A DNA stretch of 63,977 nucleotides, counting the filler, from Cercozoa sp. M6MM (taxonomy: Eukaryota > Protista > Endomyxa: Ascetosporea), in the NCBI GenBank assembly GCA_040357565.1. It is 11 parts of 11 records of this genome, joined end to end, with 100 filler letters (N's around TTAATTAATTAA, not from the genome) between each part and the next. Parts side by side here need not be neighbours in the genome. Positions count along the whole stretch, not along the records: positions 43,299 to 56,337 come from JBDODJ010000368.1; 10 more parts are not named here. One strand, given 5' to 3'. Shown here one piece after another: positions 43,199 to 56,437 of this stretch; the stretch's first letter is position 1, and each line of letters opens with the position of its first letter. The notes under the pieces are model-generated. The model saw nothing but the letters and a program-made list of their open reading frames with translations. It was not told the DNA's origin and did not search any database. Both the position numbers and the translations under genes were made by a program.

Positions 43199-43345
43199 NN
43201 NNNNNNNNNNNNNNNNNNNNNNNNNNNNNNNNNNNNNNNNNNTTAATTAATTAANNNNNNNNNNNNNNNNNNNNNNNNNNNNNNNNNNNNNNNNNNNNCA
43301 GAGTGTTATCTGGCTACTGGTTACTCGTGTGTCCTTATGGGGCAG

Positions 43346-45276
43346 GTGGAGGTGACACATCGGAGAGCATGGAGATCAGCGGGCCCACCAATGTCGTGCA
43401 CAAGATGCACATGGGTACCGAACCTTCCCTGTCATCCTAGACTTTTCCCCGACCCTCTACCCCCACCCCCTACCTCATACTCTCTTGTACTGCACCATAT
43501 AGGTTTCGACGGTCAGTCGGGCGAGTTCAAGGTCGAGAACATTCCCGACGAGTGGAAGGCACTGTTCAAGAACGCCGGCATTCGCAAGAAGGACCTCAAG
43601 GTGCGTTACCCTTTCCCCTTTGTTCTACCTCTTACTCCCTTCCCCTTGAGTATCGGTAGGACGAGCGCACGCGCAATGCCGTGATGGGCCTGGTGGCGCA
43701 GAATCTCGGCAGCAGCAAGGACGACGTCATGTCGCAGCTGCAGCGTCCCGCGCCACCTAAGCCTCCCCAGACAGCTCCTCAGGCACCTGTCCAACATCAA
43801 CCTGTGCCATCACAGGCACCACCTCAGCGTCCACAGACACCCACTCCCCCACAGGCGCCGCCGCAACGTCCCCAGGCGCCTGTACCTTCTCTTACACCCA
43901 TTCCCCTACCCCTTCCCCTTCCCCCCCCCCCCCCCCCCGTACTGTCATAACGTAGCAACCGCCACAGCAGCCACAAATTCGCGCAGGCGGACCGAGACCA
44001 CCGCCACGGAGGCCTGGTAGATCTATGCCCCCTGCTTCTACCCTCTTAGCCCCTGCCCCCCCCCTTTGGCCCCTGCCCACCCCTTTACCCCCCCTCCCCC
44101 CACCTTGTAGTCGCTCCAACACCGCCGAGACAGCCGGCCGCGCCGCCACGACCTGCAGCTCCTGTAGCTTCATACTCTCCAACACCATTCGACCCTTAAC
44201 CCCCCTCTGTCCCTTACCTTGTGCCTATGTACCCCTGACCTTTTACCCCTGACCTTTTACCCCTGTCGTTTTACCCCTGTCCTTTTACCCTGTCCTTTTA
44301 TCCCTGTCCTTTACCCCTGCGCTTTACCCCCTGCCCGCGTACATCTGCACTAGGCCCGACCGTCGGCGCCGACGCGACCGTCGCAGCCGCCGGTGCCGAT
44401 GCGACCGGTGGCACCGCCGCGACCTGCGATGCCTACGCCGCCGCGTGCGCCTGTTGCTCCGGTAGGCCTCTGTTGTATCACCCAACTATCTGTAGTTTAT
44501 CATATATATATTTATTATATATATTGTATATATAGAGATATATTTATAGATGTATGCCTACACTGATACCTATCACCTTGGACATCAATGACAGACATCG
44601 CCAGTGGCACCGCCAACGCCGCCGGTGGCACCGTCGGCCGCCCCGCCCACTGGTCCGCCCACTCGTCCGTCCAGTGGTCCTCCCGACGGACGCGCCGACC
44701 TGCTGTCGGCCATTCGCGGTGGCGCCGCACTGTCGCCCGTGCAGAGCAAGGAGAAGACTGCGCCTGCGTCTGTGCCTGCCTCGGGCGGTGGCGACTTGCT
44801 CTCGGCCATCCGCGGTGGTGCCAAGTTGCGTCCCGTTGGCGAGCGCGCCTCCTCGCCCAGCAGGTGCAGTGTGGCTGTCCTCTACTTTCTTCCTACCATT
44901 CTTCCTTCCTGCCATTGTTACTTCCTACCGTTCTTCCTTCCTACCATTCTTCCTTCCTGCCGTTCTTCCTTCCTCCCATTCTTCCTTTTGGCTCTCGCAC
45001 TACCCACCTGTGTACAGCAACAAGCCTGAGGCACCGGCGCTCACGGGTGGCCAGGCGGCCACCTTGCAGGACCAGCTCAAGATGCTTGTCACGGTAATCC
45101 CTCCGACCTCCCTTCCTCCTGCAGACCTCTGATCTGTTTACTTTTCTCTTAGGCCATGCGTCCTGCCATGGAGAACGACGACGGCGATGACTCGGACTCG
45201 GACTCTGGTAAGTTCAGTCTTGGCCTCTCGTCTTCTTGGCTTCTTGAAGTGGGTGTTTTGCACAGACTGGGACTAA
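43346..45276 (+). CDS. WAS: WASP family Arp2/3 activator, 3' part
   Basis: CRIB/GBD EISGPTNVVHKMHMGFDGQSGEFKVENIPDEWKALFKNAGI, Pro-rich region, two WH2 motifs (GRADLLSAIRGG; GDLLSAIRGGAKLRPV), and acidic tail DDSDSDSDWD then TAA. Confidence 0.93.
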
Positions 45277-45550
45277 ATCGATTCCAGTTTGGACTAGCCG
45301 GTCAGTATTTTAAAGTACCGTACGTGACGCCGTGCCATAGTTAGTCTTCTAAGAACGTTGAAGCTTGGCGACATGAAGCCGTCAAACGTGCGTCATTGGG
45401 GCACTTGACGCCGTGCCGTACTAGTACTGTACCCCGCTTTGCTTAACAAAACTGGGAAAACTCCGCTAGACCAACGATACTGGCTGAAACTGAAAGAAAA
45501 TGGTGGATGGAAAGTCTCAGGCTTAGTTGCTGCACTGCGCGCGGCAGTGG

Positions 45551-46220
45551 TCAGTGCGGTTGCGGTTTATGCCCGTCGACGTAAAAGTTCCGTGTGGCAG
45601 CAGGCAAGGACACACGCGCGCCGTCCATATCCTCCGTTACCGTGACTTGGCAACTGAGGGAAATAGACATGAATGTAAACCCAGTGAGAACATGACATGC
45701 AGAGGGCGCGTGTACCCAAGACGCGACGTGTCTGTAAGGCCGAATGCCATGTCGAGCAAATCCTCCTCTTCCTGTGCGGATAGATTGTCCAAAGATAATA
45801 AAGAAAATCATTGACTCAACACACCTCGAGCGGTGGCTGCTCGTCTTCGAGTCTGTCGAACTGTTCGGGCTCAAGGATCACGTGGCACGTCGAACACTGA
45901 AGCACCTCATGAAACAATAAAGGAAGCAACAATAAACTGCATCAAACGTACAGCAAGGGAAGCCTCGCAGGCGCCCTCCAGGTCAACGCCGTTGTCGTGC
46001 GCCACATCGAGTAGATGGGCACCCACCTTGGCCTACTGATACCTCAGTTGGCGCGGGCATTGGGACAGTAGTTTTTGAGTACCTTGACAGGCAGTTCCTC
46101 GCCTTCGGGGGTGACCCAAATAAGGTCAACAAACTTCGTGCCGTCAGCTCCGGTACTGACCGCGAAGAAACGAGTTGTCCGCGCGGAGCGAGCAAAACGC
46201 ACAATTGCCCTCGACATCAT
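45551..46220 (-). CDS. Mitochondrial [2Fe-2S] ferredoxin (Yah1/FDX2 type)
   Basis: Presequence, [51 protein letters not shown] then TGA. Confidence 0.95.
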
Positions 46221-46437
46221 CTCGCAAACAACAAGCACTCCCAGTCGACTAAATCTCGAATTTTCTTAGAGATCTCGGGCGACAAGAGCCTGCGGACACT
46301 GCGGGCGCCCACGTGCGCACAGGCCAAGCATCATCACTTCTAGCTGGCTACATATTTCTTTTTGGGAATCGTGAGATTACTTCAGGAGATTTTCTGAGTA
46401 GTGCAGAACTGTGCTGATACTCGCTGCGTGTGTTCAA

Positions 46438-46832
46438 ATGGAGGTTGTCTCAAGAAAGTAAGCCCAAGCTTGTATCAAAAAATCATCAAGGTCGCGATTC
46501 TTGGATTTGTTTTTTTTCGGCAGAGAAGTGGCGCGAGCTGACGCATGCAAGCTTCTCGCGTCTTTTATTCGGCGACAAGAGGTCGAGTTGCAGCAGTCGG
46601 GCGATTCCAGCAGTGCGCAGAACAACGTCGAAGCACTGGGTGCCGAGCGACTGGCACAGGACTCGCTGTCCTCGCTGAGGGTACCCCACTTAAACAGTTC
46701 CAGTGGTGTCGATCGTTGGATTCTTTGTAGCGCGTGCACACGTTTCTGATGCGCCGCGAGCAACCGTCGGGCATGACGTCGACGGTGGGTGCCACCAACG
46801 AGCAGATGCTGAGCGATGACGAGCAGTTTTAG
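46438..46832 (+). CDS. Small 3-exon protein (about 92 aa), possible RNA polymerase I A14-like subunit
   Basis: Clean GT-AG splicing gives MEVVSRKEVARADACKLLASFIRRQE...QDSLSSLRRVHTFL...SDDEQF. The CDS is well supported; its identity is tentative. Confidence 0.55.
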
Positions 46833-47013
46833 TTAATTTGTTACAGACTGACTCAGATTATGCAGTCTCCGCGGGGATGAACCCAGACAGACCAGTTGGT
46901 CTCCCATCATTGAAGTAAAAGAGAAAGGAGAGTTAAGAGTTTGTGGCTCTACGGTACTACTGCCCATAGAGCTGTGGCTGGACCTGTCTGAAAGCCTGTC
47001 CTGTAGATTGAGC

Positions 47014-47261
47014 CTGCCAGTTGGCAAAGAGAAAACCTCATCTACTTGGCATCAGCTGGTCAGTTGCTCTGCAGTTTGTACTGATATCCACCTCTACAAG
47101 TAAGCATTGACTGCTGTAGAGAGAAGGGGTTTTCTTGTTAAATCTTCTCACGATTTTCCCCGTGACGGAAGTTTCCGTCTACAACTCCGTCTAGTTTGAC
47201 GTAAGAACCCAGTTGGGGTAATTGTTCACTTCGCTTCTTCAAACTAAATCATTTGATTTCC
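47014..47261. repeat. Dispersed repeat family B, copy 1
   Basis: Reverse complement of 58296-58536 with few differences. Confidence 0.88.
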
Positions 47262-47624
47262 TCGCTTCGTCTAATTGACGACTTACTTCTTTTATTTAGT
47301 TCTTTTCAGACAACTGTCAGTAACAAATTACAGTAGTACGCTGGTCGGGCGAATGCGAGTTGACCTGACGCTTCAGTTCCTCCGTTGAACTGAAATGCCA
47401 AGTCCGTTTTTTCGGAAACTGAAAGGACTTACTTCAACACAAAATTAAGGAATTGCCGAGGATTATATCTCGTGATCTCGCAACCGATTTGGCCCTAAGT
47501 TACTCTAGTGTTTAATGCACACTACACCTTCACACGTCTAGCGCGGCAAATACGGTGTACGGCATACGCAAGCAGATCGTGGTTTGGTCGGGCCCGGCGC
47601 GGCGGGTTAAAGCTCTCACGCGAT

Positions 47625-49610
47625 CTAAGCAGGTTTGTGGAGCTTGGGGGCAATCAGTCCGCGCAGCATGTCGACCGTGTTACCGTCCGGGTGCAATTCG
47701 ATCACCTTATCGTCAGAGTCGCACAGAGTCGCTCGCAAGTAGCCTGAGCATGCCAGTGTTACTCTCACTTGGTCTACTTGTTAAGTTGGACAAGGCTTGG
47801 GGCGTACCACTTTCGGTGAGACCGGTGAGCACAGCATCGAAGGCTTCGCCCTGTGCGTCAGCGATGGTGACTCGCTGGCCCGAGTGCAGCCAGCGACCCA
47901 AGTAGGCGTCCAGGAAGGGCGCAAAGCCGCGTCGTTCGAACTGCCAGAGTGCCGGTTCAAGACGGTTCTGCAGTACCCATGTGTATCGGGGATACAGGAA
48001 GGCCGGATGACACAAGGGTAAGACATACACAAAACTCAGCGAGCAGGTCGTCACATCGCAGTGCTTTGGGGTCCTCTTGCTGTTGCAGTGGAGACACAAG
48101 GGTACAACAAACTCATTGAACTATACAAGTAAAGACAAGGAAGGTACAGGTGACACGGCATCGAGTCCCAAGAAGTCGTAGTTTCCTGCAAAGTCGCCTC
48201 GCAACACGGCGCTGTTTAGTGCCTGTTTAAAGGAGATTGCTGGGGCGGGGGGGGGGGAGGGTAATAACAAACGACTGTACAGCAGTAGGCGCAGAGTTGC
48301 ACACGTTGAGTCCAATGCCGACAATCTAAAGCAAGGATTAAAAAGACAAGGAGCATACAGAGTTGAGGACGACAAGTACCACGCGAAAGTCGCCACCAGC
48401 AAAGGCAGTGTCCGCAATGACACCGCCTACCTTGCAGTGTCGACCGAGCCAGAGGTCGTTGGGCCACTTGAGCGACACGAGACCCGGTGCACTCCTGGGT
48501 CGCAATGCGTCCACCTGGTAACATCATATCCGTACGATAACACACCCTACCTACCATATAAATTACAGAAACACACCGACTCGGCGAGAGTGAGAGCGAT
48601 CAGGTACTGCAGGAAGGGCAGATGCCGCGCACGGTGCCGAGGAATCCTGCACGACAGCGAACACAGCAGCGAGCCGCCCTTGCTCTACAACACTAGAGTA
48701 CTTCAACAAGCAAAATTAATAGACCTGGCACACACCTGCCAGACATTGCCACCGCGCCCTTTGCCTTTGGTCTGGTCCTGCCCAAACTCTCGATACAATG
48801 TCCCCTTTAATAGCACCCTTCCTCATGACTGATGGCCTGCGACTTGAGCAACGTACAGCAGCCAGAAAGAGTGTGCCGTCTGGAACTTTATCCATTTTGT
48901 TTGCCGCTGCCTGTTACATAGCTACTGCTGCACACTATTTGGCTTCCTTTCGTGTGTGTGTGTAAATGCACCAGCAACGTCTGGGTCGAGGAACATCGCT
49001 CTGAAAACAGGAAGAAACGCGCCAACTTTCGAGTACTCAGTTTGGACGCGAAACGATCCATCTGCGAAAACACACCATAGCAAAACGATAAAGCAGCATC
49101 TAGAACAGACACAAAGGTAACCTCAAAAAACGGTTGAGTCGAGCATGCAACGTCTTCGTACTGCTCGGGTACTTCGATACCTTCGGCCAGTCGGTTCGCC
49201 TCTGTGTGCCAAGCGCTTTCAGAATCACAAGCAACAATTATGCCCATTTAAAGAACGTACCCAAGTGATCCTGCACGACGCGCACCCGAGGAACCTTTTC
49301 GAGCTGTGTCGCGAGTTTGTTACTCGAAACCGCTTTCACGAGGAGGGGCTTGCCCTGCAGTCAGACGGTCATACTTGGGAACTCGCTCTTGGGTACATTC
49401 AGTAGTTGTACACAGGATTTTTCGAACGCGGCTCGGAGACCGTCGGTTTTGACTTCAGTGTCAGCGAGCAGTGAGGTCTGTGCACCCAACCACAAACAAC
49501 GGCATGAAGCAGCAAAAAAAAACAAAAAAACAAAAAAACAAAAAACATGTCCGGCGAGTCATTGCGAATACCACAAAGATCGTCTCATCCTCGGGATATA
49601 AAGCATCCAT
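47625..49610 (-). CDS. Biotin-protein ligase (holocarboxylase synthetase)
   Basis: CSSTQTLL, QTKGKGRGGNVW, LPFLQYL, KWPNDL, YLGRWLHSGQRV, ELHPDGNTVDMLRGLI. Confidence 0.9.
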
Positions 49611-49795
49611 ATTCCCGAATATGTGCAAATTGGATCCACTAAAGTGTGTACGAGCGCTTATACACTGTAACAGGCGTTCTCTTAATTTGAGCCACAAATA
49701 CTGGGTCATCAGAGCCGAAGCCAGAGAGTGCTGTGAGAGCTCTAAAAACGACTGCCCCGGTGCGCAAAACAGCAGGCTTGATAGAGTAGATAACA

Positions 49796-51282
49796 ATGAA
49801 CCAGCTTGAGCAATTGAAGCAGTTCAGCACCGTGGTGGCTGACTCTGGTGAGTTCGCGACGCTCGCGCAGTTCGGCGCCGAGGTATTTTTTCCCCGTGAC
49901 ATTTGTGCTACAGGGTCTGCACGCGTGTACACCTATCTTAGGACGCGACGACAAACCCTTCCCTGATCCTGAAGGCCGCGCAGATTGACGAGTACCGTCC
50001 TCTGAGTGCGTTCTCAACTCAGATTTCTCGCCTCGCGTTTGATCGTAATACAAGCAAGTGTATATCTGTGCAGTTGAGGAGGCCGTCGAGTACGCCAAGA
50101 GCAAGGATGCCGAGAACCCGTTGTCGCACGCCATGGACAAGGTAGTCTGTGCGCCTGCTGTCACGGGATGTGTGTTTCACTTTTAACGCTCCAGGTGTCC
50201 GTGAACTTTGGCCTCAAGATTCTCGAGATCGTGCCGGGTGTCGTGTCGACTGAGGTGTGCTGATCCAACAGAAAAAGGAGGAACAACCTATTCAGTTTCT
50301 GCTGGTGTGTTTTGTGTAGATCGACGCGCGTCTGTCGTTTGACAAGGATGCGTGCGTGAAGAAGGCGCTCGAGATCATCGCGCTCTACGAGCAGGCCGGC
50401 ATTCCGCGCGAGCGTGTGCTCATCAAGATTGCTTCCACGTGGGAGGGCATCCAGGTAGTTCAATGCCGAACCTTTGCCGGTTCTGTTTTCGTGATGTTGC
50501 GTTGCTGTAGGCCGCCCGTGAGCTGCAGAGCAAGCACAATGTGCGCTGCAACCTGACGCTCATGTTCTGCCTGGCTCAGGTAGGAGCAGCTTTGATGTTT
50601 GTTCCCGCTCCCTGTGTGTTTGTACGTCGGCTGAATTCAGGCTGCTGCGGCTGCTGAGGCTGGCGCCACGCTGATCTCGCCGTTCGTGGGCCGCATCACG
50701 GACTTCCACAAGCAGAAGCAGGGCGTCGACGCCTTCGAGCCCGAGAGCGACCCAGGTGTGCTGTCGGTACGTGCCATCTACGCCTACTACAAGAAGTACG
50801 GCTACGACACGGTCGTTATGGGCGCGTCCTTCCGCTCGAAGGAACAGGTGCTCGCTCTGGCTGGTAACTACCGCTAGTGCTTTTTTATTTTACCCCCCCC
50901 CCCCCCTCCGCTACCCTTCCTGGTGTAGGCTGCGACAAGCTCACGGTGGCACCCAAGCTGCTGACGGCCATGTCGCAGTGCAACGACTCGGTGGAGCAGA
51001 AGCTTTCGCCTTCTGCTGAGGTAGTTACTGCACCAGGCACCTCTGCTGAGGTAGTTTATGCTATTGTAGGTCGAGGTGCCTGAGAAGCTTGACTCGTCGG
51101 AGTCTGCCTTCCGCTGGGCCGTCAACGCTGACCCGTGTGCTGTCGTAAGTCTGGATCCTCTTGCCCTCATCTCTTTTGTTTTGTGAGCATTTTGTGTGGT
51201 GCAGGAGAAGCTCAGTGACGGCATCCGCCGCTTCGCTGCCGACACCGAGAAGCTCGAGAAGCTTTTGTCGGACATGCTTTGA
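49796..51282 (+). CDS. TAL1: Transaldolase
   Basis: [87 protein letters not shown]. Confidence 0.97.
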
Positions 51283-51676
51283 ATTCAATTGAATCACGAA
51301 GAATAACCAACGCAGCCTGTCTAAATCGCGCATAGTATATTCTTTCTTTACCCAGCCGGGATTCCGATCTAATCAAGAATCTAAACTTTCAATGTATCTT
51401 CTGAGCGGACCCAAGTGATCGCTCCATTTGTTTAATATTCATGTTTAAGTGCCATGCCCGGCGCTCCGATGTTGCTTGGAAGAAGCAAGACTATAGACAG
51501 GAGCACGGCTCACACGTAAGCTTAATTAGTCTTGGCGCATTTTTTCTGTGCCAGTCGCGCACAGAAAGAAAATTCTCGGGGAACTCTCTCCGAATTAAAA
51601 CAGTGTTTTGATTTTGTCTCTTCTGGTGATGTTCTAACTTTGTTTATCGCGTGGATTGAATGCAAAACAGTCGATT

Positions 51677-54600
51677 ATGTCGTCGCTTTCAAAAAAGATC
51701 GCAGAGATCGAAGAAGAACTCTCGCGAACACAACGGTAACTCGATTGCTCAACCAAGTCAGACTGGCGTTGCATGACAGTGCTTTTGGTTCAGGAATAAA
51801 GCGACAGAGAAGCATGTAGCTAATCTACGCGCAAAGCTTTCGGACCTACGGCGTCAGTCGCAGCGGCACAAGGTGGCAGCGGAGCGCAAGGCGACTCACC
51901 GCACAGCGACAGCGACGCAGTTCGCCGACAAGCACGGCGCCTCGATGTCGTCACTGGTACGCGTTTCTTGCACAGTCGAGCAGACGAACAAGCAACTGAA
52001 CAACCGATCAATGTGAACGTAGGGCGGATTTGGTGGCTACAGCGGTTCCGAGCGTGTGGCGCATACGGCTCAATTCGTACTCTTTTTGTTTTATAGCATG
52101 GTGGGTCTGTCTGTAGCCCAGTATACATGTGTGGCTACAGGCTGCGCTGGGTGGTACGGCCACCGAGTTCGACCTGGACTTTGTCGATGCCAGCGGCGAC
52201 GGCGAGGTCGACGTGTGTCTGCGCCGACTGGGCAAGAAGGACGCCAAGACGAAACTGCGCGCACTCAGCGAACTCACACGCACACTCTCGATGCGCAAGG
52301 GTACCCACCTCCTGGACGCTTCCTTAACAATATAATTTGCGTCCTTAAATACTTGTGTGCACCCCTTAACTATCGTTGTGCACCTTTAAACGCGAGGGAA
52401 TGTAGCCAAAGGTCTGCGCAAGGTGGCACCAGGTGTCATCACCATGTTTCGTCGACTCGCCTGGGACAACGATGACAGGGTACCTTACCTGCTGTACATA
52501 TGGACACGTGGGGTACGTATGAAGGACGTCTGGACTGAGTGGTACATTTGTACACACATTGGGACAGGTCAGGACAGCTGTGTACGGGCCGTTTGGCGTC
52601 TGGCTCGCCGGCATCGGACGACACGCAGCGCCGCACCTCAACGACGTCTTTGTGCACTGGTACTGCACTGCGCTCGAATGGACATACCAATGTGTGGCTA
52701 CGCTCTGTACAAGTACCGGTCTGTACAAGTACCGGTCTATTTGTACAAGTGTATGTGTGGTGTAGGTGGTCACACCGGTGCGACCCATCGCCAGAGGTGG
52801 CGCAGGCCGCGAATCAGGTGCTGGACGAGGTCTTTCCGGACGCACCGTCCAGGTAGTCAGCGATAACTGATCGATCATTGACCGATCACTGATCGATCAG
52901 TATGGAACCGTCAGACACCTTTCTGTGTAGTAACGATGACGGCAGTCGGCGAAGGAACCTGCTGCGTTTCGTGCGTCGTGGTACATTCCTCATCTAGCGA
53001 GGGGGAGGGGGTAAAGAGGTAGAGTAGGGTAGAGAAGGTAAAGAGGTGGGGTAAGAGAAGGGGTAGAAGAGGGTATGGGGGAGAAGAGAGGGGTAAGAGG
53101 GGGGGGGGTAAGTCTCTGGAGACCTCGGATGCAGGCTACCTGAGAGAGCTGCGCCGCGTGGTGCTGGCGTCGCCGCAGACGCTGTCGCCGCCGAATGCGT
53201 CGCCGCAGGTGCGTGCGCATGTCCGCGCGGAGCCGACTCGGTGGTCACATGTGTCCCTCTGTATGTACATGTGTACAGGAGCGGAAGCAGCGGTACGAAC
53301 GCGTCGTGTCGAGTGCGCTCAAAGGTCTCGCCGAATTCGTGGCCGATTCCGACGAGGTTCAGTCGGCCGTGCAGACTTACGGCGGTACTCTTTGACCCTT
53401 TGCCCCTCCCCCCTATAGCCTGTCCTTTACCCACCCCCACCCCTTCCATTACCGCCTACCCTTTACCTCTCCCCGTACCCAGAGGAAGAGGAGAATATGG
53501 CAGCCTCGCTGGTGGACTGGGTGGATTCGGAATTGCGCTCACTGGCCACGTGCAAGTACACGCATCTCTCTCAGTCACTGTGCACGTGGTCACTGTGCAC
53601 GTGGTCGCTCTATTGACGGTGTGTGTAGGTACGTACGTGTGCGAGCCTCGATGTACGACCTCGTGTCGGCGCTGTGTCGCTGCTGCGCACGTGTCATCAA
53701 CACCGACGACCGACTGGCGTAACCGTTTTGTCACTCTCACTGGGACACGTGCCAACTGGGAGACACGTGTGTGTGTGTGTGCAGTAAGTTCGCGCCACTG
53801 GTGTTTGGCGCACTCGCCGACAGCGCGCCGCAGTGCCAGCCGTCGCTCTGGCGAATGCAGGTACCCTCTGTCCTTTTGGACCGCGTCGTCCGTCTGTACA
53901 GTCTGTTTGTACCTACTCCTGGACACATGCACACATACACAGGTGACACTGCTGCGCGTATGTCCGACTGCCTTTGAGTTCGTGCCGTTCCAAGAGGTGG
54001 CACAGCGACTCACGAAACTCGTGTCCGGCTCGATTCGAGGTGCCTCACGTTGTTTTTTATTTTTGTATTGTCCCACATCCGCGCGGATGACTGAAAAAAC
54101 GAAAAAGAAAATAAAAACCTAGGCCGGCACGGAGCGCTGGTGCTGCAGTGTCTGCTGCCGTTTGTGGTGCATGCTCGGGTGCCCGAAGCGAGGTGCTCTT
54201 TGTGTACATGTATGTACGTATGTATATGTATGTGCGTATGACAGGGACAGCATGTTATGTGTATGTATGTATGTATGTATATGTATGTATGTATGTACGT
54301 ATGTATGTCCGTATGCATGTATATGTATGAGTGTATGAGTGTATGTATGTATATGTATGTGTGTATGTAAATGTATGTATGTATGTATGTATATGTATGT
54401 NNNNNNNNNNTATGTATGTATGTATGTATATGTATGTATGTATGTATATGTATGTATGTATGTATGCATGTATGTTGGTAGGTATATGTGTGTATGACAG
54501 GGACAGCAAGTTCGTGCGGCACATGCTGACGCTGGTGTGGCCGCGCGGACGCGCCAGCGTGGCGTCGTCGGACGCGGCGGTGCGCTGCTTCTGCGAGCTG

Positions 54601-56315
54601 TGCTTCTTCTGGGCGCAGCACGCTGCCGAACACGGTGTGTTTACCCCCCTGTTTACCCCCCCCCCTGTTGACCCCCTGTTTGCCCACTGTTGATCCCTCT
54701 GTTGATCCCCCCTGTGACCCCGCGGACAGAGGACGCGGAGCTGGGCGAGGCGGTCCGCGCGGAGTTCTGGAGTCGGTTCGAGGCGGTGCCGGTCCGCGCG
54801 GCGCTGTTCCGCGTACTGCGCGAGCTGCTGCCGCGGCAGAGTGACGAGGCCGCCGTGAGACTGCTGGGACTGCGCACGCGCGCACTGGCCGAGCTGCGTG
54901 GCCACGTGGCACTGGCCGCCGCCACTGACAGTGATCACAGTGATCGATCAAGTGATCTCACTAGTGATCATGCCAGTGATCATACTGATCACACGGATCA
55001 CACTGATCGATCGAGTGATCGAGAGAGGCACGTGCGCAAGAAACTCACGGCGCTGCTGCTGCCGGCGCTGCTGCTGCGCGAGCAGTCGGGACAAGTGGTG
55101 CCTTTACCCCTCTCCCCTACCCCCTACCCTCCCCTACCCTACCCCCCTACCCTCCTTGCCCCCTACCCTACCCCCCTACCCCCACACTAGGAGGAGGACG
55201 CCAAGGAGGCCGTGCGTATCTTCACGGACCTCGTGCTGCATACGTCGGTACTCAAGCATAGACTGATCGATCACGGGTGATCATGCGATCACGGTGGTCA
55301 CTTGTGATCGATCACTAGTGGTCACATGTGTCTCTGTATCCGCAGGAGGACCGCGCGGAACTGCGCGAGGCGCTGAAAACCGTCGTGTGCGCCTGGCAGC
55401 GGCCGTCGCGTCTCCTGTCCGGTATACACGCGCGCTGTCCGTTTGGACGGGGTCTGTTTGTACGGGGTCTGTTTGGGCGGGTCCATTTGGACGGGGTGTC
55501 TATTTGTACACACCTGTGTAGCCGACGGTAGCCACCTGGCCGAGGTGCTGGTGTCGGGCGACGTGTGGTCCTTCGCGTCGCCGCAGCAGACTGCCGACAG
55601 GTTTACCCCCCCCCCCTCCCTACCCCTCTACCCCCTACCCCTTACCTCTCTACCCCTTACCTCTCTACCCCTTACCTCTCTACGCCTTACTTCTCTACCC
55701 CTTACCTCTCTACCCCTTACCTTTCTACGCGTACCCCTACCCCTACGCCTAACCTTTACCCATCCCACCCCTCGGACAGGATCGAGATGCTGGCGCATGT
55801 GCTGCGCGAGAGGACGGACGTCGTGTGGCGCCTGCTGCCGCGTCTGTCGACGTGGCCGCTGTCGCCGCTGGCGCGCCTGCTGACGGCGCTGGCGTAGTTT
55901 TACCCCCCCCCCTTACCCCCTTTACCCCCCCCCCCCTTTACCCCCCTGTCGCAGTCGACAGGGTGAGCCGAGTGAAGGCGAGGAGTTGTTGCGACAGGAA
56001 CAACTCATGCAGCGACTGCTGCGCCGTGCCGCCACTGCAGAGGGTAGTTTACCCTCCCCCCCCCATCCCATTCATACCCTCTTAACCCCTTGCTACCTAG
56101 CACACGCCTTTGCAAGGGCGGTACGAGCGTTGTTGCTGTTGTTGCCGCATCCTCTGCGTGTCGACTGTGCCACCATACTCGTGGTATACCCTCTACCCTA
56201 TCCTCTTTACCCCTACCCCTACTCCTACCCTACCACTTGGGCTGTACGGACAGGACACTCTGCGTGCTGCTGCGGTGGAAAACGACGTCTCCACTGCGCT
56301 GTGTGCTGCACGTTG
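51677..56315 (+). CDS. LTN1: Listerin E3 ubiquitin ligase, N-terminal part, with a DRG-like N-terminal extension (3' truncated)
   Basis: GFGGYSGSER, CLRRLGKKDAKTKLRALSEL, FRRLAWDNDDRVR, APHLNDVFVHW, CDPSPEVAQAA...FP, RYERVVSSAL match the LTN1 N-terminal domain. Confidence 0.88.
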
Positions 56316-56437
56316 GTAAAGTTATGCCCCCCCTTTTNNNNNNNNNNNNNNNNNNNNNNNNNNNNNNNNNNNNNNNNNNNNTTAATTAATTAANNNNNNN
56401 NNNNNNNNNNNNNNNNNNNNNNNNNNNNNNNNNNNNN

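Follow-up and report, generated by a model that had tools for sequence, protein, structure and literature searches.

Analysing a DNA stretch of 63,977 nucleotides (hereafter the window) from the genome assembly GCA_040357565.1 of Cercozoa sp. M6MM, we find that a predicted gene for listerin (LTN1), the ubiquitin ligase that marks incomplete proteins on stalled ribosomes, opens with 41 residues that almost certainly form a helix-turn-helix (HTH) hairpin of the type known from the DRG GTPases. The strain, now named Lemnamoeba sinaloensis, belongs to the Apofilosa (Rhizaria) and is a marine amoeba with an amphizoic way of life. The gene lies in the part of the window that comes from record JBDODJ010000368.1 (positions 43299-56337). 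Our best explanation of the whole, to which we give a probability of about 60%, is a listerin with a translated DRG hairpin that serves as an added anchor on the 60S ribosomal subunit. A listerin with a DRG-type HTH is a new domain architecture of a known ligase, so far seen in one lineage and in a predicted gene.

The hairpin exons and listerin form one spliced reading frame

The initial annotation of the window had proposed that four exons (51677-51735, 51794-51956, 52023-52076 and 52141-52300) splice into one frame free of stops. Reading the window and translating the exons, we confirmed a single open frame, joined through GT-AG introns with borders at 51736/51793, 51957/52022 and 52077/52140. 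Exon 1 closes in phase 2, within the codon CG/G of Arg20. The same structure is found in the public annotation. The hypothetical protein MES1913291.1 (NCBI; 796 amino acids; Cercozoa sp. M6MM) begins with the hairpin and agrees with the spliced four-exon model letter for letter; it is encoded on a contig of 13,039 bp, the same as the contig part of the window. We retrieved this protein from a library of 1.84 billion proteins with exon 4 alone as the query; the exon is 100% identical to its residues 93-145. This offset fits exactly, because the upstream exons of 59, 163 and 54 nt make 92 codons. The other matches of the exon 4 query were multi-stretch alignments, which we read as hits to the acidic segment of the exon and not as relatives.

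Mapping MES1913291.1 onto the window, we obtained 24 exons and 23 GT-AG introns of 57-308 nt, among which intron 1 (58 nt) is ordinary. The contig edge at 56337 falls inside the listerin gene, and MES1913291.1 stops at residue 796. The contig part is intron-rich with a GC content of about 0.55. According to published work, the genome of L. sinaloensis is compact: its genes contain 13 introns on average, these introns have a mean length of 82 bp, and neighbouring genes lie a median of 162 bp apart. It was annotated by the train, predict and update steps of funannotate with RNA reads. All searches with the joined protein described below used the public MES1913291.1, while the exons of the window were spliced only for the mapping and for codon statistics.

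The downstream protein is a listerin

The sequence downstream of the hairpin had been assigned to listerin, and our searches bear this out. In a phmmer search of the PDB, residues 105-487 of MES1913291.1 matched human listerin (E 5.1e-22). Pfam placed the family Ltn1_1st (PF22958) on residues 112-313 (E 1.9e-14; 53.6 bits against a cut-off of 27). The Pfam search of this protein returned no other domain, and neither S5D2L nor TGS was among its results. A single-sequence structure model was all-helical up to residue 796, a predicted solenoid whose nearest structures in the Atlas were HEAT-repeat clusters.

The N-terminal domain and the helical solenoid of human listerin (PDB 3J92 and 9GY4) are homologous to the amoeba protein over about 380 residues, and in both proteins a GFGG-type segment stands before the domain. 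Residue 55 of human listerin aligns with residue 105 of the amoeba protein. The latter is therefore about 50 residues longer ahead of the domain, an excess that is close to the size of the hairpin. The listerin clusters of the Atlas align only from about residue 104, and none of them covers the hairpin. Unlike human listerin, the amoeba protein carries a DRG-type hairpin at its N-terminus.

The N-terminal stretch matches the DRG hairpin

The resemblance of the first 40 or so residues to the N-terminal signature of DRG1 and DRG2, which the initial annotation had pointed out, was upheld both by the PDB search and by a profile of sequences flanking the motif. Only four PDB sequences reached E<=1 with MES1913291.1: human listerin, yeast Rbg1 twice (1.3e-4 and 1.5e-4), and yeast Rbg2 (1.6e-3). 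The Rbg1 matches place residues 1-41 on the first 41 residues of Rbg1 itself, Met1 to Met1, and the Rbg1 and Rbg2 alignments end at amoeba residues 41-42. Identity is 22/41 with Rbg1 (HTH residues 1-44; PDB 4A9A, 7RR5 and 7NRC) and 20/37 with Rbg2. The amoeba hairpin has in common with Rbg1 and Rbg2 its place at the extreme N-terminus, the R-T-Q-x-N-K-A-T apex, the pair formed by Glu12 and Arg39, and the zipper of helix 2. Comparing the peptide with the Rbg1 crystal paper and a review of DRGs, we found Glu12, Arg39, the zipper residues Val28, Leu31, Leu35 and Leu38, and the apex Lys22 all kept. The apex lysine of DRGs is hydroxylated by JMJD7 according to the review, and in the alignment Lys22 takes the position of this site, which makes it a putative target of hydroxylation.

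Searching PDB, Pfam and NCBIfam exon by exon with the two short hairpin exons, we obtained only chance coiled-coil matches, none of them significant, because the pieces are too short. The DRG signal thus needs the joined peptide.

We also back-translated the apex peptide Q-x-NKATEKH and scanned it against the genomes of 185,579 prokaryote species, one per species. This gave 42 exact matches, where by our estimate about 4 were expected by chance. Forty of them lay in archaeal DRG-family genes, and the two bacterial ones were short chance open reading frames (ORFs). Among the species genomes scanned, Q-x-NKATEKH occurs in hardly anything but archaeal DRG-family GTPases. With the exception of L015, whose ORF is cut off, the archaeal matches sit in GTPase ORFs that either measure 330-376 amino acids or are cut at a contig end. 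The apex motif stands about 17-31 residues into these ORFs and the G1 motif 65-86 residues into the sequence.

The archaeal proteins (Thermoplasmata, Nitrosopumilales, Micrarchaeota and others) share the motif and up to 15 of 28 flanking residues with the amoeba peptide. They are complete GTPases with G1 at about residues 65-78, unlike the amoeba protein, and were used only as a test profile. This profile was built from 27 distinct archaeal DRG N-termini and was scored on the 28 columns outside the motif by which they had been fetched. The amoeba peptide scored 36.2 bits. None of 100,000 shuffles reached this value or exceeded 17 bits. Among 71,218 decoy windows, the sole one scoring above the amoeba peptide was itself a DRG that had escaped capture (L015), and no true decoy did so.

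Predicted structure agreed with these matches. The ten Atlas neighbours of residues 1-75 were, without exception, GTPase N-termini or short fragments; several have the DRG-type domain set, one is labelled as DRG2 family, and two come without a family or a name. AlphaFold, run without an alignment, predicted helices at residues 3-20 and 25-66 with a turn at N21-T24. The predicted local distance difference test score was 77-87 for residues 1-40, the best-predicted part of the N-terminal end, and fell below 50 for residues 55-113.

In DRGs, the HTH is followed by a G domain, S5D2L and TGS, whereas the amoeba protein has none of the three. It is therefore a listerin carrying one DRG domain and not a DRG, and it is without GTPase activity, the contact to A-site tRNA and the partner site for DFRP. 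The initial annotation had reached the same view of the gene from a missing G1 motif, and we found the DRG-type motif (GxPxxGKS), which stands at about residue 65 of a DRG, in none of the six frames of the contig part. The profile comparison suggested there likewise gave a DRG match for the N-terminus and a listerin match from residue 105. Two other identities were considered and rejected. A truncated DRG gene is excluded because the contig part contains neither a G1 motif nor any further piece of a DRG, and a C-terminal extension of the upstream gene because this gene is a complete transaldolase ending at 51283.

The hairpin is probably translated with listerin

We think it likely that the hairpin is translated as part of listerin. 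This view comes mainly from codons 42-70, which connect the hairpin with the second in-frame ATG (Met71, at 51945). Their in-frame codon score is 1.37 per codon, compared with an exon mean of 1.17, and was reached by 0 of 230 intron or spacer windows and by no off-frame exon window. There is no in-frame ATG between 51677 and 51945, and retention of intron 1 leads to an immediate stop. Codons 42-70 can thus be translated only from 51677 via the annotated splice. As these codons are exon-like and 51677 is the sole in-frame ATG upstream of them, translation from 51677 is favoured.

A possible 60S anchor at the N-terminus of listerin

Published structures show that the HTH and the G domain of Rbg1 and Rbg2 contact H43/H44, the sarcin-ricin loop and H89. 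The part that touches the A-site tRNA is S5D2L and not the HTH, and the HTH and the G domain touch 60S rRNA. The hairpin had been described as a tRNA/rRNA-binding module; these structures do not support the tRNA half of that description. In listerin, the N-terminal end is the part that docks with NEMF at the sarcin-ricin loop and the P stalk. In the mammalian structure of the complex for ribosome-associated quality control, listerin residues 13-27, which form the N-terminal helix, are held between NEMF-M, the sarcin-ricin loop and the P stalk.

We propose the following arrangement. The listerin frame would open at 51677 with the 41-residue DRG-type HTH, two amphipathic helices joined by the N-K-A-T apex. 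A stretch of about 60 residues with little order would tether this hairpin to the normal N-terminal domain of listerin. Made as part of listerin, the hairpin would be an extra 60S anchor at the sarcin-ricin loop and the stalk base. Such an anchor would raise the affinity for split 60S subunits; alternatively, it would occlude the GTPase-associated centre during ubiquitylation of the nascent chain. An added 60S anchor is the simplest reading and the most probable role, because the hairpin sits on that end of listerin which works where DRG hairpins bind. By analogy with the DRGs, it is quite possible that the hairpin works in this way.

More tentatively, the DRG hairpin may be a self-sufficient, portable 60S module that was grafted onto the NEMF-pinned end of listerin. 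In recognising split 60S subunits, this listerin would then depend on NEMF less or in another way, and it could be a competitor of DRGs and translational GTPases at that site. Its apex lysine would also make a second substrate class for JMJD7-type hydroxylases. The proposal that the protein physically links two stalled-ribosome pathways goes beyond what we find, as only the hairpin has been borrowed, without the GTPase, the TGS or the DFRP-binding surface.

Codon usage, alternative starts and other points that weigh against this explanation

A number of observations weigh against a translated hairpin that anchors listerin. The 41 hairpin codons (51677-51857) have a GC content at third positions (GC3) of 0.45, compared with 0.86 for the next 29 codons. 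GC3 is 0.77 in the rest of the listerin gene and 0.80 in the first exon of the neighbouring transaldolase, so the low value of the hairpin is not a general effect of 5′ ends. It lies near the composition of the introns (0.50) and of the spacer upstream of the gene (0.42). The codon usage of the hairpin is atypical, with a codon score no better than that of off-frame exon windows. Met71 is followed by residues that resemble a normal, canonical-looking listerin start, and MES1913291.1 forms a singleton cluster.

All of this would suit a gene in which listerin is made from Met71. The hairpin exons would then be a DRG remnant in the 5′ leader, untranslated or rarely translated, which the gene predictor joined to listerin because of a frame that is open by chance. 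We regard such a remnant as unlikely. The 29 codons before Met71 are strongly biased in frame and have no ATG of their own. The ATG at 51945 has a weaker context, with T at -3, compared with A at -3 for the ATG at 51677. If translation began at 51945, about 660 bp from the transaldolase stop codon to the start codon would be noncoding, in a genome with a median intergenic distance of 162 bp. Moreover, the hairpin keeps every residue of the structural core and differs from DRGs mainly by conservative changes, whereas free drift long enough to reset the third positions would not have kept them. Since such drift should have destroyed the peptide, we infer that the hairpin is under protein-level selection with a different synonymous regime.

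Another possibility is that both forms are made, by alternative transcription starts or leaky scanning, and that the hairpin marks a conditional isoform. The gene does offer two in-frame ATGs, each opening the same four residues, and a further ATG at 51660, out of frame, could influence initiation. We identified neither a second promoter nor an alternative splice site; nothing speaks directly against two forms, which we nevertheless hold to be somewhat less probable than the leader remnant. The out-of-frame ATG (51660-51662), which has T at -3, precedes the annotated start by 17 nt. If it is inside the 5′ untranslated region (UTR), it would open an overlapping upstream reading frame.

Further points concern the proposed anchor in a translated hairpin. 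Rbg1 without its HTH is inactive yet still found in polysomes, so the HTH's own affinity for the ribosome may be low. Helix 2 of the DRGs leans on S5D2L with one face. This domain is absent from the amoeba protein, so helix 2 misses its partner and the face is left free. The C-terminal RWD and RING parts of listerin lie beyond the contig edge.

The remaining points are comparative. Homologue searches with exon 2, with residues 1-92 and with residues 1-330 returned nothing or only the query itself. These searches worked in a length window of 30-95 amino acids for exon 2 and 438-1393 amino acids for MES1913291.1, which excludes DRGs and full-length listerins, so their outcome is not evidence of absence. 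Metagenome scans with protein patterns and with an exact 28-nt pattern from exon 2 gave no match. Altogether, no relative with the same fusion was found by these searches, which are blind to full-length listerins and to unsampled Rhizaria.

Origin of the fusion

Exon shuffling had been invoked for the origin of the fused gene. In its classical sense, this is not the pattern that we see, because the border between hairpin and listerin lies within exon 2. The composition breaks there at about codon 41/42 (GC3 from 0.45 to 0.86), and not at an intron. The alignment with Rbg1 from Met1 to Met1 points to a copied 5′ end of a DRG gene that brought its own start codon along, and the hairpin segment probably has this source.

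An 11-nt direct repeat, ATGTCGTC(G/A)CT, is present at both in-frame ATGs (51677-51687 and 51945-51955). The copies lie 268 nt apart and give both candidate N-termini the start M-S-S-L. The repeat may be the footprint of an insertion or duplication that added the hairpin, or it may be due to chance. The same kilobase contains eight more short repeats of comparable quality.

We also considered that the join is an artefact of assembly or annotation, namely a chimeric contig or contaminant DNA. The genome is a draft short-read assembly labelled as a metagenome-assembled genome, and its contigs break at simple repeats. The hairpin-listerin border, however, shows no simple repeat. A single exon of 163 nt comprises helix 2, the basic tail and the listerin start; its sequence is unique and the contig end is 5 kb away. 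The flanking genes and introns are uniform in style. An artefact is therefore very improbable.

Significance of a listerin with a DRG hairpin

The DRG review describes the HTH as unique to DRG GTPases. The initial annotation knew of no described LTN1 with a DRG module, and we too found no listerin with a DRG domain in the literature that we could search. The role of the DRG hairpin on the ribosome is unsettled, and a chimera that has the hairpin but not the GTPase is evolution's own experiment on it. The chimera suggests that the hairpin alone has a useful contact with the 60S subunit, and it offers a simple construct for testing. It would show, too, that parts of another ribosome factor can be used to rebuild the N-terminal anchor of listerin. 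As the fusion is a single-lineage event in a predicted gene, the weight of the finding depends on transcript and binding data.

Features of the listerin gene and its surroundings

The features of the 5′ part of the gene are collected in Table 1.

Table 1. Features of the predicted listerin gene and its upstream spacer, in positions of the window
Feature	Position	Strand	Description
Spacer, presumed promoter and 5′ UTR	51284..51676	+	393 bp, GC 0.42; from transaldolase stop to first ATG
In-frame stop and out-of-frame ATG	51635 (stop) and 51660 (ATG), within 51284..51676	+	
Exon 1	51677..51735	+	Met1-Gln19 and two bases of Arg20; hairpin helix 1; ATG with A at -3
Intron 1	51736..51793	+	58 nt, GTAACT...TTCAG, phase 2; retention gives TAA at 51737-51739
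Exon 2, first part	51794..51857	+	Codons 20-41: apex N21 K22 A23 T24 and hairpin helix 2
Exon 2, middle	51858..51944	+	Codons 42-70, basic tail; no DRG or listerin match; GC3 0.86
Exon 2, end	51945..51956	+	In-frame ATG (Met71) and first codons of the canonical listerin N-terminus
Exon 3	52023..52076	+	GGFGGY segment before listerin's N-terminal domain
Exon 4	52141..52300	+	Residues 93-145 of MES1913291.1
Exons 5-24 and introns	52406..56316	+	Listerin N-terminal domain and helical solenoid up to the contig edge

Directly upstream of the listerin gene, the transaldolase gene occupies 49796-51283 on the + strand (Pfam TAL_FSA, E 1.7e-22). A WASP-like gene is located at 43337-45100, also on the + strand; it encodes a P21-Rho-binding (CRIB) domain (E 6e-9), a proline-rich stretch and two WH2 motifs (E 5e-12).

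Several introns of the listerin gene resemble each other. Those at 54635-54729, 55098-55190, 55601-55779, 55894-55954 and 56044-56100 start with GT..TTTACCCC and contain pyrimidine-rich near-repeats (TACCCCTTACCTCTC and similar). They look like a family. In the genome paper, no signal of introners is reported.

In the largest exon (54730-55097), a repeat of the TGATCA/GATCGATC type at 54925-55025 encodes a low-complexity stretch rich in Asp, His, Ser and Thr. The same DNA motif also fills the listerin introns 52853-52930 and 55248-55345. The largest exon might thus in part be an intron that was not recognised, or an exonised repeat.

The longest intron (54193-54500; 308 nt, GC 0.30) consists of a (TATG/TGTA)n simple repeat and contains an N gap at 54401-54410, which fits the remark in the genome paper that simple repeats break the draft assembly.

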